A stretch of 64,000 bases of DNA, from the NCBI RefSeq assembly GCF_000143415.4, contig NW_003314274.1:2400623-2464622 (forward strand). Direction: 5' to 3'. The position numbers were made by a program, and so were the translations under genes. This DNA comes from Selaginella moellendorffii. Its lineage: Eukaryota > Plantae > Lycopodiophyta. Positions 455 to 16,328 of this stretch are shown piece after piece. Under the pieces are notes generated by a model, which did not search any database, was not told where the DNA came from, and saw only the letters and a list, made by a program, of their open reading frames with translations. Every line of letters begins with the position of its first letter. The stretch's first letter is position 1.

Positions 455-1369
455 CTATTTAAAAGTACCACTTAACTTTGAGAAACTTTCAAAGGGATTC
501 TCATCTTCAACTGGTCCAGAATCAAAACGAAGCACATTATTCCAAGCGACCCACAACCTCTCCACAATATATGCTGATATATCTTCTATGCCTGATGGTA
601 ATGGTATAAATGAGCAATTCTTATGCATCTGCTGCTTCTGGCACCCAACTAAACTTCCAATCTTTCCCTCATCTAATGCAAGCCACAGATTGATGCTAAA
701 TGGCACACAAGGTGCCAAGCTTTCCAAGAGCCACACGCACACCACCTCTGCCACCCTTGCGTTGCCGTCTTTGAATGGCCTGTGGCCGAAAAACCACAAC
801 AAAGTCTCTGCAGCGATTGTTATCAGGCGCTGGGCACGCTGCTGCCAACTGAGGCTCGGATCATTCTCCAAAGCTCCCACCTTGGTGTGGAGCTCATCAA
901 TATACTTGCCCAAGGCATCACTATCAGCTTCCGCTTCTTCACCACCACCGTGATTCATCATCACAAGCTTGTGCACCTTGACAACATCCTCCAGGCTGAT
1001 GATGTCTCCCTTTTCTTGCCTCGTATCCATGTAATCTGCAGCAGCAACCAGGCCGGCAGGGATGGCACGGGGAACTTCCCTGGGGTCGTAATTTAATCGT
1101 AGCATCCTGGCCCTGGTGGCGCCTGGCTCCAGCGTGAAGGCTCGCGGAGCCACACACAGGTCTAAGAATTCCAAGAGCTGCATCTGCTTTCCAAGGTTAG
1201 GCTCAGGGACCTCCGACAGCTTGGGATGCACGGCCTCGATCTGTTGCAAGAGTTTGGAGGTGCCTACCTCTGGAACATACGCCCACGCTCTTTTGCATCC
1301 CCGCCGATGCCATCCAGGCAGCTCTGTCGCCCACTCCATAAGATGTTCTAGGGATCCAACCCTATACAA
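455..1369 (-). CDS. Fic/DOC (fido) domain protein, variant motif (Fic-1)
   Basis: 304-aa ORF with 'ISLEDVVKVHKLVM' (Fic N-terminal helix) and 'GHRPFKDGNARVA', a variant of HPFxDGNGRxxR. The 5' end is uncertain: a possible acceptor (ttgtatag) lies near 1362, or the ATG at ~1339 is used. Confidence 0.75.
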   Translation of the reverse strand: MYRVGSLEHLMEWATELPGWHRRGCKRAWAYVPEVGTSKLLQQIEAVHPKLSEVPEPNLGKQMQLLEFLDLCVAPRAFTLEPGATRARMLRLNYDPREVPRAIPAGLVAAADYMDTRQEKGDIISLEDVVKVHKLVMMNHGGGEEAEADSDALGKYIDELHTKVGALENDPSLSWQQRAQRLITIAAETLLWFFGHRPFKDGNARVAEVVCVWLLESLAPCVPFSINLWLALDEGKIGSLVGCQKQQMHKNCSFIPLPSGIEDISAYIVERLWVAWNNVLRFDSGPVEDENPFESFSKLSGTFK

Positions 1370-2603: not shown

Positions 2604-3579
2604 CTATTGCTGGCAGAATCCACTAGTCACCTGAAGAACAGTTGGAATCCATTCACCATAACAATTCACTACTAACCTGCTCATAGAACTTATCCAGCAT
2701 GAATGTTGCCACTTCATACGGTGGAGTCCTCCTCACTTGACTCTTTTGCAATAACCAGCCGAAAAACAGGCCGCTGAAAAAACAAATGGATGAATACCAA
2801 GTTGAATATTGAGATAATATATTACCTTGGTATGGTGAAGTGAATACCGAGAGCATGGAACATAATGCCTGCCATCATCACGCGAGACACTCTCCCATTT
2901 CCATCAACAAAAGGATGAATCTCAAGAAACTCCTTTGCTACAGCAGCAGCAAGCTTGATAGCAGCAGAAACTCTTAGTTCCGGGGAAGAAGCCTTCAACT
3001 CCTTCAAAAAAAGAAACAAAGAATAAAAAGACCAAACAAACTAAAATGAAAACAAAGTATGCTCTTACCAGGTTCAAGGTGTTGAGAGCATAGTTGAAGG
3101 AGTCCACAAATGATGCCATTCTTTGCCGCACCAAACTTGGATGAAGATAGGGGAGTTGTTCCTTCTTCCGGAGTTGACCTTGAGAGAGTTCCAGTTTAAT
3201 GGTATAAACCATCTGTGTGCGGTATTCTCCACGCTCTCCATCCATGTCCAAGTCTGTCACGTTCAACGCTCTGTGAATCTCCGCTATATCATTCTCCGTT
3301 ATTCTGCCTCTGAGGAGTGCCTCCTCGAATGCCGTCTTGGATGCGAATTTGTCACGCCCAATACAACCTGCTAGCACAGCTACCATCTGCTCGCTTGTTT
3401 TCTCTTGGTTGATCGGGAACTTGATATCATTCATCTCTGCAACCACATTTCTCCACCATGGTTCATTCTCCATGCTGAAGTCGACATTCATCTAAATCAC
3501 ACAGGATAGAGATGAGAAAGCTCGTAGGAAAGCAAGAAAAAGGGACTACCAGGATTACCTTATCGCAGCACTTAGACAT
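2604..3579 (-). CDS. Spliced Fic-domain protein with canonical AMPylase motif (Fic-2)
   Basis: Exons joined by GT-AG introns (~3492-3558, ~3002-3069, ~2775-2825, ~2631-2676) give ...ITENDIAEIHRAL...ERGEYRTQMV...PYLHPSLVRQRMASFVD...EFLEIHPFVDGNGRVSRVMM... The start is uncertain (ATG 3579, or an upstream exon from ~3742). Confidence 0.8.
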
Positions 3580-5211
3580 CGTGGATTCCTCACTTGGCCA
3601 ACTCTGTAGCAGCCACCATCGATAGTAAAATTGGCATCATCAAGAAGAAACTCGGGCGCTCAAACTCCGTAGCTCTCAAAGGGAAGGAAAGGCGAAAAGG
3701 GACTACATACCTTGTCACGCGCTTAGACGGCAATTCTCTCATAGACTCGCTCGATCCTGCGAGCCGCGGCGGCCGCTGTGCTAAATGCTCACCGATGAAG
3801 CCCTAGCGCGCTCCCCAGCGCTCCCAGCAAACTCCCCCCAAGCTATATATTCAAACTCCATGAAGCCCTTTCAACGGCTCACAATGAGCCACGTGTACTC
3901 CGGCATCTGGGCATCGGAGATCTGGCGCAAGGAGAAATACCCATTCTGGGCATATGCTGCTATACCTTGCAATCCAGCTGCTGGATTCGGCTCGAAGCAT
4001 CAGGTGATCGGCCCAGCGTCTCCGCCAGATGCTCTTCGAGCGCCCCTTCCTCGACCGGGAATGTCTCCAGCTAGGAACTTGGACGCGAGGGCCCTCTCGC
4101 CATGCACAACCCGCCATCTCCCCGCCTTGCCATGGAACAGTGACGACCATCGCAAAAAAGCAGCGAGTTCGTCTGTGCTCCAAACGCGATAGCCTGAACT
4201 GCGCAAACGAAGCACTTGGCCTTCCTCGTGCTAGCCAGTGTCCCGCTGGGATTCCTGCCGCAACCCCTGCCGAGCATAGCAGCCAATGTGGAATGATGAA
4301 AGCGTGGCCCATATAACATGGTTACAAAATTAAAGCAACATAAAGAAGTCACAAAAAAAGAAGTTAGTATAATTGCTTTACATTATAAAAACAAAAAAAA
4401 AAACTGCATTTAGCCATAAAAATTAAATAATAAATAAAAATCAGGAAAAAAAAAAACACAGAAGAAAAGGAAGCAAATACCTTGGGTCACTCTTTACATG
4501 GTGTTAAATTTAGTTTCTTGAAGATCTATCAAGCATTTAAACCACAAATTTTTTGTCTACTTCTTATATATGAAGACACTGAAGACACTGACTAATGCAC
4601 TATTTTATATATGCAGTTATCTTACAAGATTAGTTGAGTAAATTAATTAGGTAAGTATTACAAAAGATGGCAAATAAGTAGACAGGTATCATTTAAAGTT
4701 AAATGTCTTAAAAGGATTTTAATCTACCTAAGAACACATGATATATATGTGTATATTACTAATTGAATGCAATATATTTATAAGTTTATTAGTTACAACT
4801 CCCATAAGCTCGTGATATAACTCTTTTGCTTGCAATCTAGGATTTTGTTTACAGAGGATTGGGTAATGTTCTTTGCTTGAACTTGGGACTTAATATTATG
4901 TTTTTATTCATTATAATATTTCCAGACTATATTTATTTATAGTAATTGTTATTCATAATAATAATTTTTGAATCAGGTAAGTTTACATTAAAATATTTAT
5001 ATTATCTGTAATTATTCTTATTAATTATTTTTACTTAGTATACTTAAGATCTTAGTTCCCATTAATAAACTATTTGTTTGAATAGTAATATATTTATGTT
5101 CTAAAAAACTTAAAACATAATGAGAGGGATAAAGTAGGATTACCAAGTTATAAATACAGGTTGATTACCCTAGCCATATTTGTATATTTTATATATACAA
5201 TATAAAGACAT

Positions 5212-5385
5212 TGTGAGTGCATGGAATATGGAAAGGAAATACAGAAATGTGCATATCAATTAACCCCAAAACCCTAGCTTATATACAGGAGCGAGTGGTC
5301 CGGATTGAAACCAATCCGACGGCTACCAAAATCCACTACGCTAATATTAGTATACGGCATCGTAGCCGTACACTTGGCCCTCACA
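5212..5385 (-). repeat. 3' LTR (174 bp, TGTGAG...CTCACA)
   Basis: Identical to 10048-10220 except one extra C near the end; 6-bp terminal inverted repeats. Confidence 0.97.
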
Positions 5386-5400
5386 TCATCCCCTCCTCTC
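5386..5400 (-). other. Polypurine tract
   Basis: Minus strand GAGAGGAGGGGATGA directly abuts the 3' LTR. Confidence 0.85.
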
Positions 5401-5417
5401 GGAATAATGGAAGGCCG

Positions 5418-8400
5418 TCAGGGTTCTCTTGTAGATGGGCCGGGATCTGGAGGAACGTCAGGAGGAGGCATCAGTGGATCTGTAGACGGTATTAACTGCT
5501 CCTGATCCCTCTGTATGAAGCGTTTTAACCGCTGCACATGCACAATCTCCGGAGGATCAGCCTGCTGAACGTCATGCCGAACCTCATAAACTTGTGGTCC
5601 AACTTGCCGCAACACCCGATACGGTCCTTTCCACTGCACAAGGAGCCCCTTAGATAAACCACATACCGTAAGATGGGGAAAACGGACTAACACCAAATCA
5701 TCCACTTTGTACTCCACTGGTGGACGATGATGGGAATTGTAGCGCCGTTGTTGTCCCACTTGTACGCGGCCTAAGTGTTCAGCAGACTCTGCTCGGACAA
5801 GTAGAAGAATGCTTGTCAAATATTGATCCCATGACCTAGCATCAGGAGCTCGTGGCAATCGCGAAGGTAAACCTAGCTCTGTTGGTAATATTGGATCATG
5901 ACCATATAGAAGTTTATATGGTGAAGCACCAACAGAACTCTGCACCCCTGTGACATAAGCATACCGAAGAAACGGCAAATAACCATCCCAATCCGAATGT
6001 TGAAAGTTCACATACTTCGCAATCATCCCTTTGAATGTCCGAACGAGCCGTTCCACCAGACCGTCTGATTGTGGATGATAAGCACTCGTAAAAGTGTGGC
6101 GTATCCCCAACCGAGATGTCAAAACATGAAATACCTCAGCCATAAATGCAGGACCATTATCCGAAAGAATCCGTTCTGGACAAGAATGCTGGAACACCAC
6201 TCGATTGAGGAGGAAGTATCCAACAGCAGTTGCAGAGGCACTAGCAAGAGCACCAACTTCCACCCAACGAGTCAAGTAGTCAGAAGCAATAATAACATAC
6301 TCATTGCCAGCAGTCGATCGCGGAAAAGGTCCCATAAGATCAAACGCCACCAACTCAAACGGACGAGAAACTGCAATTGACTCCAACCGTCCTTCCGCAA
6401 CACAAGGGGGAGTATTACGAGCTTGGCACCAAACGCAGCTACGCACATACCGGATAATATCACGTCGCATCTCTGGCCAATAGAAAGATCTGCGCAACTT
6501 CTCGGTGACACGACGGTGTCCCATATGCCCACCTAGAATAGGAGAATCATGGTAGGCATGGAGAAACCGCGGAATAAACACCGAAGGCACCACCAGCCGT
6601 AAATGAGCATCAGGATCCGTCCCCACAAAATAAACAAGGCCATCTTCAAGGCGATATTGAGAATGTAAATGCCGAAAAGGCAAGTCATCAGCAAGTGATG
6701 CAGGATTCTCAAACCCATCTCGAAGCCTTCGAATCCACGGCTCAATCTTTTGAGCCTCGCGAACCTCATCCAGAGAAGGTAGATCTTGCTCTACGCCCTG
6801 TGGACACTGAACGTCAAGGACAGCAACCGCCGACGGCACAGAATCCTCATCTAGAAAATCCACAGATGCTGGAACAACAGGTTCATCAGAAACATGAGAA
6901 GTGAGTGGAGAAGGAAGAGGAGCTCGAGAAAGGGCATCAGCATCAGCCATAGAACTCTCTGGGCGATGAACAACATCGAAATCATATATCTGAAGCTTCA
7001 AAGCCCATCGAGCCATACGACCAACCAGGTTCTTCCGCTTCAATAATGAAGTAACAGCAGCATGGTCACCTTCAAGTAACGTCCGAGAACCATGTAGATA
7101 GGCATGAAGTTTCTCGAAACCCCAGACTGCTGCTAAACACTCCTTCTCCGTCGTGGAGTAGTTCATCTCCGCTGGTTGTAATGTACGGCTTATGTATGCA
7201 ATGGGATGGCGCTGACCAGGCACACTCGAGCTCTCTTGCATCAACACACCTCCAAGACCAATGTCAGAAGCATCCACGCGCAAAATAAAAGGTCGAGTGT
7301 AGTCAAGATATGCCAAAACCGGAGGAGTTGTCAATAGCTCTTTGAGATTCACGAACGCCCGCTCACAATCGGGAGACCAGATGAAAGATGACGTTGATGA
7401 CTTCAGCAACGCTCGCAATGGTAAAGTGCGATCGGAAAAATGATCCACAAAACGACCGAGATACTGCACCTTACCCAAAAAGCGCTGCACATCATTCACA
7501 CACTTCGGAGTAGGGAACTTTAGAACAGCCACAAGTTTGTCAGGATCAACTTGCAAACCCTCACGAGAAATACGGTACCCAAGATAAGTTGTGTCCTTGG
7601 ACCCAAACACGCACTTCGACCGCTTCAGCTTTAAACCAACGTCGCGTAGCCGATCCAACACTTTACAAACATCACGAACATGCTCCTCCCACGTCCCCTC
7701 CGAGTGGATCAAGACATCATCAATGAAGTCGGCCGTCACCTCTGGCATATCGCAAAGAACCTCGTCCATCATGCGCTGAAAAGTTGCTGGAGCATTGTTC
7801 AAACCAAACGGCATCACCAAAAACTCGTACAAACCAAATGGTGTACAAAAAGCAGTCTTAGGAATATCGTCTTCAGCCATCGGTACTTGCCAATACCCAG
7901 AAGCAAGATCTAGCTTGGTGAACCAACGACTTCGCCCCAGATGATCCAAGAGATCAGCAGTGTGAGGAAGAGGGTACACGTCCGGGATCGTCACTTCATT
8001 TAACGGACGATAGTCGATGCAGAAACGAATACTCCCATCAGGCTTTGTCACAAGATGAGGTTCACATGCCCAAGGACTCCGCGACTTCCGAATAACACCC
8101 TTCTCCAACATCTCCTTGACGTTTGCACGTAAAATCTTGATCTCCTTGGGTGACCGACGACGAACAGGAACCTTGATTGGACGAGCATCCCCGGTTGGAA
8201 TGGGATGACGTGTGGCAATCTTGGCCCCAGACGATAGGTCAAATTCAAAGAGATCAGAATACTCCTTCATGAGCTGATCAACAGCTGCAACACAAAGATC
8301 ATCGGAGGGATCGAAAAAGGGAAGAGCAGAACAAGATGGAAACACAAGAGGAAATAATGGGGGAACAAAAGTAATGGAAGCAGAGGTAGAAGTAGAGGGA

Positions 8401-8906
8401 CGAAGAGGTACAGAAGTGAGAGGAATGGATGAAACATAAGGAAGTATGAGACAAGGGGGAAAAGCCTCAAAGTCACACTTGGCATGATTGTGCTGCAACC
8501 AATCCATACCAAGAATGAGGTCAAAAGCTTGACTCGGCACCACCTGCAACGACTGCAACTCAAGCTCGAGATCGCCCACACGCACAACCAGGTCCGCCTC
8601 ATCTCGTGCACATGCATGTGTACGGCCGTTGCCATAAAGAATGAAAACTGGATCCGCCGCACGACGCAAGTGTAGACGACAACGTGTGGCAACAGGTCGA
8701 GCAATAGAAGATAAACTCGAACCTGTATCAACCAACACGGAGAGAAGAATAGGAGACCTCTTGTTATAAAAACGAGCTTGGAAAGTAAACACTGGATGAA
8801 CCGGTGCCGAGTGAACCCCTTGATGATACTCCCGAAAGAAAAATGGAGGGATCACTAACTTATTCGCGCAAGGTCCCTCCATTACTCGCGCGACTCCTCG
8901 TTTCCC
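5418..8906 (-). CDS. pol: Pol polyprotein (protease, RT, RNase H, integrase), -1 frame relative to gag
   Basis: VLVDTGSS (protease); KLDLASGYWQV, MPFGL, FIDD (RT); VDASDIGLGGVL (RNase H); HDSPILGGH...CVWC, DDE core and WKGPY (integrase). Uninterrupted frame; no chromodomain seen. Confidence 0.95.
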   Translation of the reverse strand, partial: GKRGVARVMEGPCANKLVIPPFFFREYHQGVHSAPVHPVFTFQARFYNKRSPILLSVLVDTGSSLSSIARPVATRCRLHLRRAADPVFILYGNGRTHACARDEADLVVRVGDLELELQSLQVVPSQAFDLILGMDWLQHNHAKCDFEAFPPCLILPYVSSIPLTSVPLRPSTSTSASITFVPPLFPLVFPSCSALPFFDPSDDLCVAAVDQLMKEYSDLFEFDLSSGAKIATRHPIPTGDARPIKVPVRRRSPKEIKILRANVKEMLEKGVIRKSRSPWACEPHLVTKPDGSIRFCIDYRPLNEVTIPDVYPLPHTADLLDHLGRSRWFTKLDLASGYWQVPMAEDDIPKTAFCTPFGLYEFLVMPFGLNNAPATFQRMMDEVLCDMPEVTADFIDDVLIHSEGTWEEHVRDVCKVLDRLRDVGLKLKRSKCVFGSKDTTYLGYRISREGLQVDPDKLVAVLKFPTPKCVNDVQRFLGKVQYLGRFVDHFSDRTLPLRALLKSSTSSFIWSPDCERAFVNLKELLTTPPVLAYLDYTRPFILRVDASDIGLGGVLMQESSSVPGQRHPIAYISRTLQPAEMNYSTTEKECLAAVWGFEKLHAYLHGSRTLLEGDHAAVTSLLKRKNLVGRMARWALKLQIYDFDVVHRPESSMADADALSRAPLPSPLTSHVSDEPVVPASVDFLDEDSVPSAVAVLDVQCPQGVEQDLPSLDEVREAQKIEPWIRRLRDGFENPASLADDLPFRHLHSQYRLEDGLVYFVGTDPDAHLRLVVPSVFIPRFLHAYHDSPILGGHMGHRRVTEKLRRSFYWPEMRRDIIRYVRSCVWCQARNTPPCVAEGRLESIAVSRPFELVAFDLMGPFPRSTAGNEYVIIASDYLTRWVEVGALASASATAVGYFLLNRVVFQHSCPERILSDNGPAFMAEVFHVLTSRLGIRHTFTSAYHPQSDGLVERLVRTFKGMIAKYVNFQHSDWDGYLPFLRYAYVTGVQSSVGASPYKLLYGHDPILPTELGLPSRLPRAPDARSWDQYLTSILLLVRAESAEHLGRVQVGQQRRYNSHHRPPVEYKVDDLVLVRFPHLTVCGLSKGLLVQWKGPYRVLRQVGPQVYEVRHDVQQADPPEIVHVQRLKRFIQRDQEQLIPSTDPLMPPPDVPPDPGPSTREP
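8842..8906 (-). promoter_or_regulatory. -1 programmed ribosomal frameshift signal: G GGA AAC plus H-type pseudoknot
   Basis: Slippery heptamer at 8900-8906 in the gag frame, 6-nt spacer, stem 1 (8885-8893 with 8864-8872, 9 bp including one GU), stem 2 (8874-8883 with 8842-8851, 10 bp). Confidence 0.88.
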
Positions 8907-8995
8907 GAATGCACCTCGGTATCCAAACCTTCCACCGCAGCAGCACCAACGGGACGTTGCTGACGCCAAGGTCTCCACCCAGGAAATGGAGGTCG

Positions 8996-9814
8996 CTAAT
9001 CCGGAAAGCGCCGACAACGCCGATAAGTATGACCAACTTCATCACACGCCCAGCAACGAATGTCACGGCCACGACCACGTCCTCGCCCTTGTCCTTGGAC
9101 TCGAGTAGCAGCAGCATCAACCTCCATGGGAACAGGACCATCACTCATAGGAAGTGGAGCTGAAGGACGTGTAGCAAGAAGTGGAAGAGGCGACGTCTCA
9201 TAACGTTGTGCCAAGCGAAGAGCATCGTCAAGAGTGGCAGGAGCAAGTCCATGCACAAGTCCGACAAGATCTTGACGAAGTGCTGGCCACAGCATTCCTA
9301 GCTTGATCCGCTCCGACATATTTGGCTCCGCACGAAGCAAAAGACTTCGGAAACGAACGCCAAATTGCATCACCGACTCAGATGGCCCTTGGCGAAGACG
9401 ATGCAATTGTTGGAAGGCATCATCACAATCGTCGGCGTGTCCGAAGGCGCGTTTGAAGACGTCCGGAAGAACACTCCAATCGCCACGAGTAGCTGCGCTC
9501 AATCCATTGTACCACTGCAATGCTGTCCCTTGAAGACATGTGGGGAACTCACGCAAACGCCGAGCATCATCCCAAGAATGATATGTGGCAATCACCGTGA
9601 AGTGATCGAACCAATGGTACACATCATCCCCAGGATTCCCACGAAAGAACTCCGGCCGAACGCGAGGATTGGCACCAAAAGCAGGAGGAGTTGTACCATG
9701 TGCCGTGAACGCCGCCATCAACTGAGTTTGGTTGTTCAATTGCAGGCGCATAGCATCAAGCAATTGAACCAACTGCTGCTCTAGAGTCAAAGGAGGAGAT
9801 TGCGGATCGGCCAT
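8996..9814 (-). CDS. gag: Gag (capsid plus CCHC nucleocapsid), interrupted by TAG at 8996-8998
   Basis: RPEFFRG...WFDHF...WDD...LQGTALQWY...LRQGPSESV (retrotransposon gag), CWACDEVGHTYRRC knuckle. The frame continues past the TAG for 37 more codons to a TAA at 8882-8884. Confidence 0.92.
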   Translation of the reverse strand: MADPQSPPLTLEQQLVQLLDAMRLQLNNQTQLMAAFTAHGTTPPAFGANPRVRPEFFRGNPGDDVYHWFDHFTVIATYHSWDDARRLREFPTCLQGTALQWYNGLSAATRGDWSVLPDVFKRAFGHADDCDDAFQQLHRLRQGPSESVMQFGVRFRSLLLRAEPNMSERIKLGMLWPALRQDLVGLVHGLAPATLDDALRLAQRYETSPLPLLATRPSAPLPMSDGPVPMEVDAAATRVQGQGRGRGRGRDIRCWACDEVGHTYRRCRRFPD

Positions 9815-9875
9815 GAAAATGAATGAGAAAGAAAGAGCAAAAGAAGAGAAATGACAAAAAGCTAGAAAGAAATGG

Positions 9876-9988
9876 TAGATCTAGACAATGCAAAAAGCTA
9901 GATCTAAACCAAAATCTTGAAAGGAAAGAACAAAAGAAAGGAAATGGAAAAAGCTAGATCTAGACAATGCAAAAGCTAGATCTAAACC
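9876..9988. repeat. Two ~35-bp direct repeats in the retrotransposon 5' leader
   Basis: tagatctagacaatgcaaaa(a)gctagatctaaacc at ~9876-9910 and ~9955-9988. Confidence 0.8.
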
Positions 9989-10030
9989 GAAATCCCAAAT
10001 CCAAGCACTCCCCAGGGACAATCAAAGGTG

Positions 10031-10046
10031 CCCCTCACCTCCACCA
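10031..10046 (-). other. Primer-binding site, tRNA-Ala-like
   Basis: Minus strand TGGTGGAGGTGAGGGG starts 1 nt inside the 5' LTR; complementary to a tRNA 3' end of the form ...CACCUCCACCA, typical of tRNA-Ala. Confidence 0.7.
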
Positions 10047-10047
10047 A

Positions 10048-10220
10048 TGTGAGTGCATGGAATATGGAAAGGAAATACAGAAATGTGCATATCAATTAAC
10101 CCCAAAACCCTAGCTTATATACAGGAGCGAGTGGTCCGGATTGAAACCAATCCGACGGCTACCAAAATCCACTACGCTAATATTAGTATACGGCATCGTA
10201 GCCGTACACTTGGCCTCACA
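10048..10220 (-). repeat. 5' LTR (173 bp)
   Basis: Near-identical copy of 5212-5385. Confidence 0.97.
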
Positions 10221-10313
10221 ACATGAAATTATAAAAATAATTTCTAAATTTCTAAAAATAGATATAAATATTTTATAACTGGGTTATTCATTTATGCTTT
10301 AAATTATTATGGT

Positions 10314-10990
10314 AAGCCTCATACAGGCCTCAACAACACAGCCATCTCAACCATGTCAAACAGGAACTCAACGTCAGGATAGCTCTCACTATGGACCTTG
10401 TCGAAGCTCACTGTCCAGAATCAGTGTCTCACCTTTTTTAAGGCAATAGAGTGCGGATCCCAGCATTTCCATTTCCAGTGGAAGTCCAAGCTTCGCGAGG
10501 CCCATCCCAGCCAGAACAATCCAGGTGGCCATCCCTGGGAGCTTGTCTCCCTTGGACCTACGAAGCTCTGGCACCGTATCCTCGAGCTTGGCTTTCTCGT
10601 GTGCCCCTCCAAGTCACTGTTTGCTCCTCGGGATATCGAGTCACTTATGTCATCGACCTTGACACAGCCAGCTTCACCATCAACACATTCAAGAACACTG
10701 TGTCCTTCAACACGGAAAACAACCCACACAACTGGATGGCTACCACGAACGCCCCTCATCGCCTCTCTGTATCTCCTGTGAACCGGCAGCAGTGAAAACT
10801 TCGCGAGAAATCCGGGTGATGGAAACTTTGGAAATTACGCACAACAAGAGGGTTTGAGAGAACTCTACCACTGCACGATCAAACGGGAAATTCAAGAGAA
10901 TGGATAGGATGATCCTTGCGAGAGTCGACGATCCTTTTGCCGAGGAAGTCCAAGTAGGAGTCCAAATGATTGTAGCGGAAGCTTATGTGG
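10314..10990 (-). pseudogene. Truncated, frameshifted duplicate of the 5' part of the gene at 11781-13923
   Basis: Colinear DNA similarity to ~13124-13907, including the intron remnant. Retains VIDLDTASFTINT-like and WMATT-like segments. Has deletions, including loss of the first splice donor. Confidence 0.85.
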
Positions 10991-11780
10991 TGAAATTATG
11001 AAAATTAACAGTTCAAACTGTGGTTTATATTAAGCCCCTTTAGGTACTTCCCTAAAAACGGCTTGAGGCATCGGTGGATGGCTTGTGAATGGCCGTTGTG
11101 GCTCTTTGCGGCGCCTCGTCATGGAGCTGCTGAGGGGGTTTGCTCGCTGCAGGCATCGTCAAATTATGGTGGCCATCGTCATCGGCATCTGGATACACTG
11201 CAAGAGGGGAAGAAGCAAGGTGTGTGATGAGTGGCCATCATCCTGGCCGCAGTGGTGCCCGCAGCATTTTATTCCCTAGAGCAAAGTGGAGAATGCCTTG
11301 GAGCATCAAGTGAATGTCGGCAGAAAGAAGATCGCCAATGATCCTCGGATTCGCGAGCTCCTGCAGCAGGCGGCTGCCACCTTCAGCTCTTCTCGGTGGT
11401 GCTTGCCATGACTGGGGATCGGGAAACAAGGTCGCAGTGGATCCACTCTTTGCAGTGCAAGATCAGGAGGAAAACGTGGTGGTCCAGGAGGATCCTCTGT
11501 CCACGCGCAGCCAACTCTCCTCCATCGTCGTGACTCATTCTTCTCGACTGCTCATTTCGAATCGGACCAGCAGGCGAGAATATGGCCGCAAACGAGCTCC
11601 AGTGCCCCTATCAAAGGCAGACAAGGACTTTTGACACCGTGTTTGATCCTGGAGATGGCAAAGAAGCGGCTTTGCATCTCCATGATTTTATGCATCTGCT
11701 TCCGCTGTGGAGATGGAGAAGCAGATGCAGTTAAGAGATGGAGCCCCGCATCAAACCTTTTTAACACAGGTTAGTCTCTT

Positions 11781-13923
11781 CTAGGTCATGACCGGGCCAT
11801 TTCTCTTGGCAGCTCCCGGGCATGGTTCTCCGACGAGTGGACGAGCCGAGGTACGAGCCTTTTCGTTTCTTGGGTTAGATTTCCACAGGGATTTCCACCT
11901 GTGAGACATGGAACCTTGACGCGAAAGTCTATTTGTATAGATGCTACTCTTGAATTTGCAGGCAGCACAAGAAACAAATTGAAATGAAAACGATTTTTTA
12001 AAATTACCTCTCTTTTCCCAGCAAATGAAGCTGTACACTAATGGATTTGTATCACTGTAAGAGAGGCCTTTAATTCTGTTCAAATTGCAGACTTTCCATA
12101 CACTCCAGATTACGTTTGTGTCCACGAAAATCTTTTCCATACCTCATCCACAGGAAAAGATCGCCAATTCCAGTAACTTGGGCTTTGAGCCCTTGACTGC
12201 CTTCGAGGAGCCGGGCCGATAAAATACATGATTTCTCAACGATAGCATGATTCAGAAGAACAATTGAGCTTCCAATACTTCCTTGTACGCGGCAGTAACT
12301 CTCATCCAAGACATTGATCGGGAGCTCGATATGATTCATCCTGGTTTTCCAAAATCTTTTTACATAAGAAACATACAAAGATTGATCATACCTTGTCAAG
12401 TAGCTCAGCAAAAGTTTGAACCCAGGTTCAACAAGTTTTACTTCATCGTAGCCAAATTCCCAGTCATGAAATGTATGAGGCCTCTCTAAACGAATCAAGG
12501 GAGCTGGTTGGGAGCGAGCTATGGTTATCCTTTCTCCAATCCTCGCAACCTTTATAGTCATTACGTGAAGGACGCTCAAAGCGCACACGCAAATCTCCTC
12601 CACTCTCGGCTCCAAAGACTTGAAATGCTCCACAGCCATTGAGACAGCATTCTGGACCCCAGCGTCGTCGTTGAGCTGAATCGCAAGGAGAACTCTATGC
12701 TCTCCACCCTTGCTAATCATCCAGGGAGAAGCCAATCTTGCAGCGTTTTCAGTGTCTCAGCAGCGGTTCAGTCCGTCATCCAGAGGGAGATTTGAAGAGA
12801 AACAGCTTTCATACCATATACTATGAACTCGCTTCTTTGGCTCGCACGTAGTGAAGCTGATGTTCTCCCATTCAGCTAGCACCAATACATACTTGGCAAG
12901 CTCCACAAACGCTTGCATGTCCGGCTCCAAGAGAGGCAGCTCCATGAAGAACACGTAGTTTTGGCACACCATACCGTAGAAGACTAGAGCATGGAGCTTT
13001 GCATGGTCGGATGTAAGCGGCTCCTCCACGATCGCAGCTTGAGAGATCATAGAACCACTGTGAACGTTATGAGTTTTGCTGAGGGAAATCTCACGTATGA
13101 CGAAGGGATTGGAGCGCAAGTGAAAGCCTCATACAGCAGCCTCAACAACACTGCACTCTCAATCATCTTAAACAGGAACTCAACGTCAGGTTCGCTCTCG
13201 CTCTCACTGATCAACAAGCGACGGACCGTGTCGAAGCACTGATCAAGCGGGAGTAGAAGATGGCCGAGTATGATATTCCAAGCTTCATGACCACGGCTGC
13301 TCAGCTTTCGATTCATCGTCTCCTGCAGAACTCGGTCATCCCAGCCAGCAAGAGCGATCCATTCTGGGGGGTCGTACGTGCAAGCCATCCAGTTATGTGG
13401 TATGTTTTCCATGTTGGAGGACACAATGTTATCGCTCGTGTTGATGGTGAAGCTGGCCGTGTCAAGATCGATGACATAACTGTAGTGGACATAGGTTCTC
13501 CGAGGAGCAAATAGTAACATGAAACTGCACGGGAGAAAGCCGAGCTCAAGGATACGGTACCAGAGCTTTGAAGGTCCAAGGGAGACAAGATCCCAGGGAT
13601 TGCCCCAAGGATTCCCGCCTTGAAGTTCTCTCCGTATCTCCTGTGACCCGGCAGCAGTGCAAACTTGGTCCAGGAATTGGGGTGATGGAAACTCCACGTT
13701 CCCAAACTACAGATGGAAATTTACACACAGCAAGAGGGTGTCAGAGAACTCTCACCTGGAATACCACTGCACGATCAATCAAGAATTTCAAGAGCTGGAC
13801 AGAATGATCCTTCAGAGAGTCGACGATCATTTTACCGAGGACCTCCAAATTGGAGTCCATTTGATTGTAGATGCAGTAGTAGACACCTTTGTAGCGGAAG
13901 CTTATGTAACCGTGGGTGCCCAT
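11781..13923 (-). pseudogene. Fungal-type uncharacterised protein (MGTxGY..RYKG.YY..YN..DS family), probably disrupted
   Basis: Exon 1 13923-13756 (MGTHGYISFRYKGVYYCIYNQMDSNLEVLGK), 49-bp GT-AG intron 13707-13755, exon 2 with YSYVIDLDTASFTI, later LLAIQLNDDAGVQNAV...ALSVLHVMTIKV. Frame change near 13050-13100 and an in-frame TGA at 12757-12759. The 3' end is approximate. Confidence 0.6.
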
Positions 13924-13980: not shown

Positions 13981-15921
13981 TTAAGCAATGAGACCAAAGC
14001 TACTACTATCGCAAGATCTGGTGGTCTCTGTTCTTGCCAGCAACTTCTCAAGACCTCTTTCAGATCCTTGCCCGTCCTCCGGCGGCGGTGGCAAGTTGAG
14101 ATCCAGCTCCAGGTGTCTGCTGCTCCGCCTGGAATGATCTGGGCGACGATCACGATCGCAATTATCACCCGCAGTTGCCACCAACACCATCGGACTGTCG
14201 TTATCAGTCGTCGTTGTGGACGCTGAGACCCTGAGTACCTGATTGCTGTCAGCAGCAGGAGGAGGAGTGGCAGTACCCGGATTGTTGCTGTTGTTACTTC
14301 CCCCGACCCAATGGCAGCGCTTGTGGCCTCCCAGCGCTTGCCCGGTCGCGAACACTCGGTGACAAATCGAGCACTCGTGTCCTCCTGCCAGAGATCTGTT
14401 AGAGAGACTGGAGTCCCTGTACTGCTGCTCGTACTGGTGGTACCGGTTCTCCTCGTCCGGATCGTAGCAGTCATCGTCAAGAGTGGTCAGCGTCGTCGTT
14501 GCCTTGCTGCTGCTGCTACTGCTCGTCTTGATCGCAAAGCACCCCTTGACCTTCTTGTGGCTGGCGCGGTGGCCCCCGAGCGCCTGATGCGACTTAAAGA
14601 CACGCTTGCACGTCGCGCACGAGTACCTCCCTGGTGCTGTTGCGGACGCCGCCGAGGTAGCAGTAGTCCGGCAGGAGGAAGACTTTGCGCGCACCCAGTC
14701 CACTTCCTCGCCACCTTGATCATCGGGATCCGCCAGCAACTTTGGATCCAGCGGAGATCGATGGAGTCGAGCTCGCCGATGATGATCGTCGGCAGCCACT
14801 GACGCGCACGAGGATGCCCGCCTGATCGTCTCGGTGTCACCAGCCCCGCCGCCGCCGCCCGCGAGCATGACGAGACAATTGGCCATATCTTTCTCGTCCT
14901 TGATGTCAGCTGGAGCGGCAAGAACATGAGTCCGCCAGCGATTCTTCTGGCGTAACGAGCGGCGGCCGGATCTCCGTCCCGTCATTATCTTCTTGTTTCC
15001 AGGCGGGATCACTGGGCCTGATGCTGCTGCTGCCTTGCCTGTGATCGTCGTGGCGGCAGCCATCGCCATTGCTGCCGCGACGTACGTCGCCTCGATGCTG
15101 TCGCTGCTCTCAGGACCCTCCTCCTGATCGATGGCGTCGATCTTTCGCTTGGGATTCTTCGCCTTGTCGATCCAGCTCGAGGCGGCGGCGGCGGTGGCGA
15201 TCTTGTGGTCGCGATCGACAGCTCGCGGAGACGACGAGCCTGACGAATCGGAGGATTCTCCTCCTTGCCCTAAGATCATTGGAAATCTCCTGTGGCATCT
15301 CATGTGACCAGACAAGGCCTTACCGGATGGGAATTGCTTGCGGCATTCCAGGCATGCAAACGGCGGCGATGATCCTCCTCCCAGCTCCTGCGATGGACGA
15401 TCTTCTTCTTTCTTGATCGCCGGCGGCGGCCGCGGGAGATTGGCGTAACGATCTGGCGCTGGAGGATCGAGCTGCTCTTCCGATTTCGATTCCTCCACCA
15501 GGCGCAAGCTCCGGCCGCGCTTGGGATGGCTCCGCGGAGGAGAATCTCGCAGATTGGTTGGATGCATGACGCCGCCGCCGCCATCGATCATCGATCCGCC
15601 AAGAATGCCACGGATCCTATCCCGGCCACGGACTTCGTCCAGGAATCGCCCCAGGCCAAGATCGAGGCGGCAGTCCCTGGCCGAGATTCTTGCATGCCGC
15701 TGCTCGACCTGATCATTTCCATTCCAGGCCGTCGCCGCCGTCGCTACTTCACTCTTCCCTCGATCGTCGGAAATATCCTGCGAGAAGCCACCGATATTTC
15801 GACGATTCCCCGGCCGATCGGCCATGGCGAGCAATCCCAGCTCCTCGACGCGCTGCTGCCAAGATTTGAGGAAAGAAGGCGGAGGAGGAGAAGCGGCAGC
15901 GAAATCTTGCTGCGTCGCCAT
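13981..15921 (-). CDS. Three-finger C2H2 (QALGGH) zinc-finger repressor with EAR motif, DAZ1/ZAT3-like
   Basis: Fingers [51 protein letters not shown] and [22 protein letters not shown]; L-box DMANCLVML; EAR motif LELDLNLPP. First ATG at 15921; intronless. Confidence 0.9.
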
Positions 15922-16328
15922 TCCAGAGCATACATCAGTACATCGAGCTAATTTAATCTTTGGATCCCGGAAGAGAGCTAGGCGCGCTAAAGCGAGGAGC
16001 TCGAAAGAAAGAAGATCAAAAAAGAGCTTTAGGGAAGTGGAAGAAGGAGAAGGCAAAGAGCCATTTCTAAACGGCCCATACAGCCACCATCATAGTAGCT
16101 GCTTATAGCGTAGTGACAGTGGAGTGGCGTGGGTTAGTTAGTAAGTACAGTGTGCTCTAACTATTACTTAGTTAACACCCATCGCTTTCCTCTACTCCTC
16201 CCTCTCGCGAGCTCGCGTAAGGAAGTTGCTTTTCCACTTCACTAGTTAGCTAGAGTAGAGAAGCATATGCCATGTCATTGACTGGATCAAAGCCACATTA
16301 AATTAAAGCTAAAGGGGGTCTCTAAGCT

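Follow-up and report, generated by a model that had tools for sequence, protein, structure and literature searches.

A putatively acquired, giant-virus-related gene in the genome of Selaginella moellendorffii

Structure of the gene

We analysed a window of 64,000 nt from the genome of Selaginella moellendorffii, which carries a multi-exon gene on its minus strand. The ATG of this gene is located at 13923, where MGTHGYISFRYKGVYYCIYNQMDSNLEVLG begins, and the protein starts with MGTHGYISFRYKGVYY. The original prediction quoted a series of peptides in a given order, and among the six-frame ORFs of the window all of them are found on the minus strand, in that order and in long open frames. In detail, a 216-aa ORF at 13047-13697 (-) carries YSYVIDLDTASFTIN...MENIPHNW, the ORF at 12757-13119 (-) carries AFVELAKYVL, and a 221-aa ORF at 12070-12735 (-) carries LAIQLNDDAGVQNAV...ALSVLHVMTIKV...IARSQPAPLI together with LPINVL. 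The plant-sized introns proposed at the same time are recovered as candidate GT-AG introns of 56-115 nt which would keep the frame open, obtained by enumerating the in-frame GT-AG pairs between the ORFs. The G+C content at the gene is 47%, which is plant-like.

Exon 1 (13756-13923, minus strand) has 56 codons, MGTHGYISFRYKGVYYCIYNQMDSNLEVLGKMIVDSLKDH...VVFQ, ends in phase 0 at the donor CAG/GTGAGA, and contains the N-terminal beta-hairpin and the first helix of a viral-type domain. The frame changes between exons 1 and 2, the exon-1 frame meeting a stop four codons past the donor. In the preferred model, intron 1 spans 13692-13755 (-) and is a phase 0 GT...AG interval of 64 nt, while an alternative acceptor would extend it to 13641 (115 nt); the exon start at 13691 is favoured because the similarity to a Selaginella paralogue (EFJ37078/EFJ33731, see below) extends up to 13679. 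Exon 2 (13135-13691, minus strand) reads FPSPQFLDQV...LWYRILELGF...HYSYVIDLDTASFTIN...MENIPHNW, followed by a region specific to the gene, and its first ~105 codons finish the viral-type domain. Its 3' end is ambiguous, with the donor at either 13135/GTATGA or 13095/GTGAGA. The putative exon 3 frame (12757-13119, minus strand, ...AAIVEEPLTSDHAKLHALVFYGMVCQNYVFFMELPLLEPDMQAFVELAKYVLVLAEWENISF...) closes at the TGA 12759-12757, and the best candidate for intron 2 is the 56-nt interval 13134-13079 (-), with several alternative solutions. The frame of the putative exon(s) 4-5 (12070-12735, minus strand, 221 codons) is the same as that of 12757-13119, and a 102-nt candidate intron 3 (12814-12713, minus strand), again one of several solutions, would splice away the in-frame TGA. 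Extra exons are possible in 11781-12069 (-) up to a stop TAG at 11783-11781, as read from splice sites alone.

For the later exons (12757-13119 and 12070-12735), scans of Pfam, PHROG and NCBIfam give no homologue, nor does BLASTP of the ORF 12757-13119 against small viral and metagenomic ORFs. A single-sequence fold of the 221-codon ORF is uninformative (pLDDT 37.5). The motif LPINVL had been taken as possibly F-box-like, a reading without support from Pfam, as the ORF 12073-12735 matches no family at E<=1, PF00646 and its relatives included. The gene is absent from protein collections, both in length-limited word searches and in an exhaustive HMMER search with exon 2 as query, and is therefore evidently unannotated. 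Throughout the analysis, the exons served as separate queries and as separate rows in the trees.

The 'MGTRG' protein family

Over its first ~150 residues (all of exon 1, and exon 2 up to its middle), the gene product is a member of an uncharacterised protein family with the consensus "MGTRG...YKGxYYxxYNHxDSYP...EYxYxIDLD...IPxxW". The original prediction gave these motifs in the same order, and profile search and alignment show that it describes a real family including the window gene. We identified the family in viral contigs of IMG/VR by a degenerate DNA pattern for YKGxYYxxYNxxDS, while exon 1 alone as query in viral contigs gave no match. All seven loci retrieved are in-frame ORFs starting with MGTRG or MVTHG; several of them are on GVMAG contigs and one is on a 1.47-Mb Orpheovirus genome. 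Another search found 18 further viral loci, and a word search with the profile gave 221 proteins. Among the 120 of these listed, most have 143-290 aa and two are longer (361 and 442 aa); the only organism name is Orpheovirus (ORPV_338), with no plant and no fungal name. On the whole, the relatives retrieved from viral and metagenomic sequences are all intronless ORFs of 123-442 aa, mostly below 200 aa, and they are placed on giant-virus MAGs, on Orpheovirus (ORPV_338), on AT-rich metagenome contigs and in phage families (PHROG 30528, matched by 127 of 131 family members). Contigs of family members, 0.27-1.6 Mb in size, have dense intronless genes including an aminoacyl-tRNA synthetase, eIF5A, RING and TnpB. 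Longer forms with C-terminal extensions (266-442 aa) also exist, one of them adjoining a DUF3431 gene.

Judged from these sequences, giant viruses (Nucleocytoviricota) carry the family in abundance, and large phages have it as well. The resemblance of the N-terminal domain to small phage proteins, which had been noticed earlier, is genuine, and the domain makes up the entire length of many small viral proteins. No relative is found in a scan of bacterial and archaeal genomes, so that the phage share of the family comes from PHROG and BFVD alone; tblastn of exon 1 against the INPHARED phages gives no match either. Scans of the entire family with Pfam, NCBIfam and PADLOC return scattered chance matches and no Pfam family. 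In the literature on 'MGTRG' and EFJ10148 (a Selaginella gene family discussed below), we found nothing beyond Maumus et al. 2014.

The viral domain is predicted to fold (pLDDT 88.5) into a compact alpha/beta structure with an N-terminal beta-hairpin, three helices, a four-stranded sheet and a C-terminal helix. Structural matches in BFVD, with E=7e-6 to 1e-4, are phage G gp614 and proteins of medusavirus, Orpheovirus, Tupanvirus and Edafosvirus. With the confident viral model, Foldseek and VIA give no fold relative in the PDB (best Z 3.5), and the exons and the family profile match no PDB sequence. The near-invariant polar residues of the family are T3, R4, N20, H21, D23, S24, Y25, E94 and D102, and they hint at a pocket to which the far N-terminal end and the loop between hairpin and helix would contribute. 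The domain might be a small enzyme or a ligand-binding module, a tentative assignment that we hold at clearly less than even odds. As H21, Y25 and E94 are replaced in the plant copy, this copy, if made as a protein, would most likely serve for binding or as a scaffold, without catalysis, in fusion with a new C-terminal part.

Membership of the Selaginella gene

A family profile was built from viral and metagenomic sequences without the window sequence and used in hmmsearch on the complete set of 1527 ORFs that the six frames of the window contain. The profile detects the ORF of exon 1 with E=2.9e-16 (55.8 bits) and the ORF of exon 2 with E=1.5e-5, the latter on YVHYSYVIDLD...IPHNW and collinear with the profile; the only other matches in the window are two pieces of a nearby pseudo-copy. 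By BLASTP, exon 1 is 50-62% identical over 34-39 aa to small viral and metagenomic ORFs. Direct scans of single exons are weak, with phrog_9723 alone in PHROG (E=0.014) and nothing useful in Pfam and NCBIfam.

At the N-terminus, MGTHGYISFRYKGVYYCIYN fits the M-G-T-R-G start and the hairpin F.YKG.YY..YN, with R4 replaced by H as in a viral 'MVTHGY' clade. The following loop, NQMDSNLEVLG, retains N20, D23, S24, L29 and G30, while H21 is replaced by Q, a residue that a few members from viruses share, and Y25, invariant in 131 family sequences, is replaced by N. In the C-terminal half, the family has a helix of the type QGSL..VL.SGY, then the strand E-Y-x-Y-x-I-D/N-L/F-D, an F and IP.xW; here SKLWYRILELGF...HYSYVIDLDTASFTIN...MENIPHNW lines up with it position by position, H standing in place of E94. 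The window copy departs from the family at three near-invariant positions, which counts against the explanation favoured below.

Compared with the small viral 'MGTRG' proteins (Orpheovirus IHUMI-LCC2 ORPV_338; GVMAG contigs), motifs, order and spacing are shared: the N-terminal motif at the protein start, the YKGxYYxxYN.xDS hairpin, the xYxYxIDLD strand and IPxxW. Further viral kin are ORFans of medusavirus, Tupanvirus and Edafosvirus, Bacillus phage G gp614 and PHROG 30528/1987. The viral proteins are mostly single-domain, of 123-200 aa, intronless and AT-rich, whereas the plant gene, on a plant chromosome, is broken within the domain by a candidate intron, has a host-like G+C content and continues for ~300 codons in an extension without relatives; it has Q, N and H at the near-invariant positions H21, Y25 and E94. 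The window gene is a derived, domain-level member of the family and not a typical one.

Exons 1 and 2, each taken by itself, find their nearest kin in a single 'MVTHGY' clade, whose contigs have 19-26% GC; the closest metagenome relatives in general lie on contigs of 19-30% GC with a giant-virus-like look. In the trees (176 and 87 rows), which are unrooted, have moderate support and long branches and give no starred placement to the Selaginella rows, the exon-1 row and the Selaginella paralogue form a pair (SH-aLRT 83), and a 29-row side (SH-aLRT 91) holds the three Selaginella rows together with short viral forms of the 'MVTHGY' type. Feature searches of the ESM atlas give weak viral leads from exon 1 and nothing from exon 2.

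Copies of the gene in Selaginella

With exon 2 as query, the exhaustive HMMER search covered 1.84 billion representative proteins, and its only real match is a Selaginella paralogue, the hypothetical proteins EFJ37078 (SELMODRAFT_404005) and EFJ33731 (SELMODRAFT_406483), which represent one divergent locus and are the sole other plant match. A second match of this search was discarded as a low-complexity artefact. The paralogue is 29% identical to exon 2 over 120 aa, and the likeness spans LW[YF]R[IL]LELG...Y.Y[IV]VDLD...IP[HK]NW, running past the viral domain. The divergence from the window gene is very large, as for a paralogue rather than an allele. At the N-terminus, MGTxG and YNxxDS are lost and the locus is degenerate, with stops; the gene models are partly artefactual and their C-termini are unrelated to the later exons of the window gene.

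The pseudo-copy, at 10300-11010 (-), is a degraded partial duplicate of exon 1, intron 1 and exon 2 with 83-92% identity. It is located 0.8 kb from the main gene and beside a young Ty3 element. A 24-nt deletion takes out YKGVYYCI and the upstream start, and an internal inversion places 10518-10755 on the plus strand. The canonical YNHLDSYLDFLG is retained, and in the loop NHLDSYLDFLG both H21 and Y25 are still present; the two pieces match the family profile with E=1.8e-5 and 0.004.

Genomic neighbourhood

Upstream lies an ORF of 691 aa for a C2H2 zinc finger of the QALGGH type (13981-16056, minus strand; Pfam zf-C2H2_6, E=3e-26). A gap of 57 nt separates its stop codon (13981-13983) from the gene's ATG on the same strand, which agrees with the original prediction that a conserved plant gene lies 57 bp away. 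The other flanking genes are also of plant type (kinase, NIF phosphatase, COG1 and TORTIFOLIA1-like). With such ordinary neighbours, short candidate introns and a plant-like G+C content, the claim that the gene is integrated is well supported.

A young Ty3/gypsy LTR retrotransposon occupies 5209-10215 (-), with a 1199-aa pol ORF, a gag ORF and 171-nt LTR cores of 99% identity, and a near-identical pol is found at another locus of S. moellendorffii. The element was considered as a carrier of the gene and rejected, since its LTRs (5209-5379 and 10045-10215) delimit it and the pseudo-copy lies outside them. The original prediction further described an island of foreign-looking genes of roughly 14 kb. 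Of this island, a Fic domain is confirmed in the ORF 455-1369 (Pfam), for which no close relative is found in viral contigs; 5 kb of the supposed island are the Ty3 element, which stops ~85 nt from the pseudo-copy and divides the island.

Origin of the gene

Taken together, the gene looks foreign-derived and integrated, as was first proposed. We consider it probable (about 60%) that the locus is a gene integrated into a Selaginella chromosome, or else a pseudogene of very recent date, whose ~150 N-terminal residues are a diverged 'MGTRG' member acquired horizontally and related to giant viruses. A Selaginella ancestor would have taken up the gene, the likeliest donor being a giant virus or the DNA of an organism that serves as host to one; the sequence would then have drifted towards host composition, gained introns and a lineage-specific C-terminal extension of ~300 residues, and been duplicated inside the Selaginella genome.

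The most serious alternative is that it is a foreign-derived but dead relic, no longer expressed or constrained, the introns being in truth frameshifts and a nonsense mutation. We regard this as quite possible, though with somewhat less than an even chance. The gene is unannotated, over 1.85 kb its frame shifts twice and is interrupted by a single in-frame stop, and near-invariant residues are replaced in the main copy, two of which the pseudo-copy has kept. The dN/dS between the two copies is 0.72, with neutrality not rejected; the DNA next to it contains a damaged copy as well as a young retroelement, the N-terminus at the paralogue locus is degenerate as well, and the ATG being only 57 nt from the stop of the neighbour leaves little room for a promoter. 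However, the four successive open frames (60, 216, 120 and 221 codons) are far beyond chance at 47% GC, for every break there is a phase-compatible, canonical GT-AG interval (56-115 nt) that could span it, and the homology of exons 1 and 2 ends and begins at candidate splice sites. The opposite case, a domesticated giant-virus gene in a vascular plant, in which a captured MGTRG domain gained introns and a plant-specific C-terminus, formed a small family and is expressed, appears less likely still.

The gene had been labelled fungal-type, and a transfer from fungi would mean that the family is widespread in fungi, the viral and phage proteins being distant kin of its N-terminal domain. This label was not without basis, since the consensus given with it is almost exactly that derived from natural sequences, and the longer forms with C-terminal extensions, including the one beside DUF3431, would suit a fungal family. 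Nevertheless, no search returned a fungal protein (the word search with exon 1 covering proteins of 31-98 aa, and the profile matches being judged from the 120 of 221 listed), the relatives that can be named or typed by context are all viral, and the nearest ones are extremely AT-rich and intronless. Moreover, fungal genomes contain endogenous giant-virus insertions (PMC7017919, PMC10640383), so fungal copies alone would not indicate a fungal origin. We therefore do not retain the label, on what is weak negative evidence, and consider a fungal transfer rather improbable, although the family may have fungal members; on the present sequences a source related to giant viruses seems at least as likely as a fungal one.

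Vertical descent of an old plant gene, lost elsewhere and captured by viruses from green hosts, is very improbable. Giant viruses do acquire genes from their hosts, and the unrooted tree leaves the direction free; but exon 2 matches Selaginella alone among the 1.84 billion proteins, no plant name appears among the 120 of 221 family matches listed, and in viruses and phages the family has both diversity and depth. Contamination of the assembly by viral or fungal DNA, which has nothing but the foreign affinity in its favour, is hardly credible beside a plant zinc-finger gene within 57 nt, the four further plant-type neighbours, an adjoining Ty3 element of Selaginella type, a host-like G+C content of 47% and a gene divided by candidate introns.

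Giant-virus genes in land plants

We know of no giant viruses of land plants. NCLDV-like genes in Physcomitrium and Selaginella are the only traces of giant viruses reported from land plants (PMC4083422). For S. moellendorffii, Maumus et al. 2014 described the families of EFJ26844, an exoribonuclease, and EFJ10148, of unknown function, the latter with 23 copies and with fungal and chlorovirus homologues, and found no additional NCLDV-like genes near them (PMC4083422). The two families share with the window gene the genome, the multi-copy state, giant-virus relatives and an origin that is not settled. The EFJ10148 family, with relatives also in a few fungi, fits the window gene by description alone.

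Our locus adds a plant gene whose relatives are overwhelmingly giant-virus ORFans. As fungi too carry giant-virus insertions, other 'fungal-type' genes of Selaginella may in fact be of giant-virus type, the label being a likely misnomer. The analysis also delimits a sizeable viral family of more than 220 proteins, without a Pfam family or a solved fold, whose predicted structure is confident enough for designing experiments. Since the gene appears to have been reshaped by its host, in introns, composition, an added C-terminus and duplication, it bears on how a viral ORFan is converted into a host gene. If domestication is true, it would offer a cellular system in which a widespread family of viral proteins could readily be studied, and would strengthen the case that early vascular plants were once hosts of giant viruses.

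Gene structure

The gene under study opens on the minus strand with an ATG at 13923, from which MGTHGYISFRYKGVYYCIYNQMDSNLEVLGKMIVDSLKDH...VVFQ is read. Exon 1 is assigned to 13923-13756 (-) from sequence and homology, and its frame is shut four codons past a CAG|GTGAGA donor at 13756. Beyond it the same strand has three more long open frames, at 13047-13697 (216 codons), 12757-13119 (120 codons) and 12070-12735 (221 codons). All peptides quoted in the original prediction are found in these four frames in the order that it stated, and its distance of 57 bp to a plant gene is confirmed, 57 nt separating the ATG from the stop of an upstream C2H2 zinc-finger ORF (691 codons). The F-box-like LPINVL that it proposed is unsupported by Pfam scan.

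Canonical short introns predicted from the sequence could close every break, and short introns are usual in the compact S. moellendorffii genome. For intron 1 the likeliest span is 13755-13692 (-; 64 nt, phase 0). We prefer it to a candidate of 115 nt ending at 13641 because similarity to the Selaginella paralogue (EFJ37078) extends up to 13679 and the segment PSPQFLDQV resembles DPVQFRDFI of that paralogue. Exon 2 would run from 13691 to a candidate donor at 13135 (GTATGA), which goes with a candidate intron 2 at 13134-13079 (-; 56 nt), or to one at 13095 (GTGAGA). The only in-frame TGA (12759-12757) lies between the 120- and 221-codon ORFs, which share one frame; it would be either excised by a multiple-of-3 intron, with 12814-12713 (-; 102 nt) as candidate, or a recent nonsense mutation. 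Judging by splice signals, extra 3' exons are possible as far as 11781. For the window gene, all searches, folds and tree rows used single exons.

Family membership and conserved residues

Single exons gave nothing usable against Pfam, NCBIfam, PHROGs and PDB sequences, or in word searches and phage tblastn. A degenerate DNA pattern encoding YKGxYYxxYNxxDS was scanned across IMG/VR, and its matches are all in frame (7 of 7), opening small ORFs whose first residues are MGTRG, MVTHG or MSTRG. Several are carried by giant-virus MAGs (GVMAG) and one by the 1.47-Mb Orpheovirus genome. These ORFs close with EYxYxI[DN][LF]D...F...IPxDW, and the window has the equivalent HYSYVIDLDTASFTIN...MENIPHNW at the same place. 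Another 18 viral loci joined the family through a scan driven by an alignment. A profile of 131 family members, with the window sequence excluded, was searched against all six-frame ORFs in the window, 1527 in number; it matches the exon-1 ORF (E=2.9e-16) and the exon-2 ORF (E=1.5e-5) at collinear profile positions, and the remaining matches are only the two pieces of a pseudo-copy. Membership of the gene in this 'MGTRG' family is thereby established at the domain level, as judged from sequence.

Scans with Pfam, NCBIfam and PADLOC place the 131 members in none of their families; PHROG 30528 is matched by 127 of them and PHROG 1987 by 42. A profile word search retrieves 221 proteins at E<=1e-3. 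Among the 120 listed, most have 143-290 aa and two have 361 and 442 aa, none carries a Pfam domain, and Orpheovirus ORPV_338 is the sole organism-named protein. C-terminal extensions unrelated to that of the window gene (266-442 aa) are seen at locus L022 (64-1146) and in the retrieved proteins P0063, P0095, P0105 and P0108; P0063 adjoins a DUF3431 gene on a Logan contig of 37% GC. The C-terminal ORFs of the window gene gave no relatives in searches and no usable predicted fold.

An exhaustive protein search with exon 2 has one non-artefact match, on S. moellendorffii scaffold GL377566.1. Another match, P0001 (2434 aa, Ser/Phe/Leu-rich, perfectly repetitive), reaches E=3e-17 via 27 repeats and was rejected as a low-complexity artefact. 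On the same scaffold (locus L001, 10001-11332), the model of paralogue EFJ37078 opens with a one-codon exon 'ATG|GT', evidently a prediction artefact, and in the allele model EFJ33731 (459 aa) a PPR-like fragment from upstream has been joined on. The real N-terminus of the paralogue (..ISFRFNGIYYLLYRGQLEDVGERLV) is a degenerate form of the MGTRG domain, and one haplotype has stops upstream of it.

For one viral member a confident structure model was obtained (pLDDT 88.5, pTM 0.86), in which residues 5-20 form an N-terminal beta-hairpin, accompanied by three helices, a sheet of four strands and a helix at the C-terminus. Its BFVD matches are Bacillus phage G gp614, medusavirus, Orpheovirus, Tupanvirus, Edafosvirus and uncultured Caudovirales (E=7e-6 to 2e-4), and in the ESM atlas it matches viral clusters (TM 0.74-0.76). 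PDB has no match to this model (Foldseek best E=0.16; VIA best Z=3.5) or to the family profile. Near-invariant polar residues lie at the extreme N-terminus (G2, T3, R4, G5), in the post-hairpin loop (N20, H21, D23, S24, Y25) and on a strand (E94, Y97, D102); we infer, from the model alone, that they might form a pocket, as of a small enzyme or a module that binds a ligand. Because three of them are lost, the plant copy would more likely serve for binding or as a scaffold, joined to a new C-terminal part, or else be inert.

Origin of the gene

Members occur on contigs of 0.27-1.6 Mb that look like giant viruses, with dense intronless genes including class-I aminoacyl-tRNA synthetase, eIF5A, RING proteins and TnpB. 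A metagenome scan yields 57 loci, of which almost all are small ORFs carried by contigs with 19-30% GC. A scan covering one genome for each bacterial and archaeal species gave no relative. Exon 1 has 50-62% identity over 34-39 residues to a clade 'MVTHGY...FKYKGIYY.FYNHSDSYFEHLGN', to which the best viral matches of exon 2, searched independently, belong too. In an 87-row tree, unrooted, with long branches and with all branches holding Selaginella rows unstarred, exon 1 and the paralogue pair (SH-aLRT 83), and all three Selaginella rows fall within a 29-row side (SH-aLRT 91) with short-linker viral forms including the 'MVTHGY' clade. This suggests that the Selaginella copies have one origin and are akin to sequences of giant-virus type, donor and direction being left aside by the tree.

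In addition, locus L061 (1142-2504 of JACCEA010135181.1, 41% GC) has two tandem family copies adjoining an MscS-like channel gene, on a contig that may be eukaryotic rather than viral. The first copy (254 aa) has YNQWDS, which is like the window, and an IQ-motif-like end (ILIQAYVRRFLAKARA); the second appears interrupted.

The original prediction of a foreign-type, integrated gene with a virus- or phage-like N-terminal domain stands, but its fungal attribution is unsupported, no fungal protein having come from the exon-2 exhaustive search, the word searches with either exon, or the profile and metagenome searches. This absence is weak evidence against a fungal source, because exon 2 alone is too diverged to retrieve viral members in the exhaustive search, exon 1 was word-searched against very short proteins only, 120 of the 221 profile matches were listed, and the genome-level scans covered viral, metagenomic, bacterial and archaeal sequences. 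The EFJ10148 family of S. moellendorffii, with 23 copies, unknown function, homologues in a few fungi and one chlorovirus, and unresolved origin (Maumus et al. 2014, PMC4083422), may by its description be the 'MGTRG' family. Endogenous giant-virus DNA is present in fungal genomes (PMC7017919, PMC10640383), and therefore fungal copies alone would not argue for a fungal source.

Genomic neighbourhood

The upstream zinc-finger ORF matches Pfam zf-C2H2_6 (E=3e-26), and other neighbours encode a protein kinase, a NIF phosphatase, a COG1/Vps51-type protein and a TORTIFOLIA1-like protein. A complete Ty3/gypsy LTR retrotransposon lies at 5209-10215 (-; gag 8996-9814, pol 5418-9017); it is young, its LTR cores (5209-5379 and 10045-10215) being 99% identical. 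Its pol has a near-identical fragment beside the paralogue on GL377566.1 (L001, 11684-13618), which, with the exon-2 match on that scaffold, assigns the window to S. moellendorffii or a species very close to it. Outside the LTRs, with a gap of ~85 nt to the element end, lies the pseudo-copy at 10300-11010, a partial duplicate that covers exon 1, intron 1 and exon 2 at 83-92% identity. It is without the start codon and 24 nt of exon 1 and has an inverted internal segment (10518-10755, +), and keeps the canonical motif YNHLDSY, which is absent from the main copy. In the 'Fic cluster' named by the original prediction, ORF 455-1369 (-) has a Pfam Fic/DOC domain (E=1.8e-6), with no close relative on IMG/VR viral contigs by pattern plus tblastn, and ORF 2922-3491 (-) has no such Pfam match.

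Live gene or relic

The window gene has 47% GC, which is host-like, against 19-30% in its relatives, and therefore points to long residence in the host. This composition speaks in favour of an intact gene, as do the four unusually long consecutive open frames, the predicted correct-phase splice solutions available at each break, and homology that begins and ends at predicted splice sites. Against a live gene speak its absence from the protein collections searched, so that it is unannotated, the replacement of family residues H21, Y25 and E94 by Q, N and H in the main copy, a dN/dS between main copy and pseudo-copy of 0.72 (few sites; neutrality not rejected), and a promoter space of only 57 nt upstream of the ATG. 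On the whole, we give a probability of about 60% to an intact gene whose descent is foreign and probably giant-virus-related; if so, that it is already a relic is somewhat less probable than that it is still live. Virus-related genes in Selaginella are of a known kind, to which this gene would add a further member.
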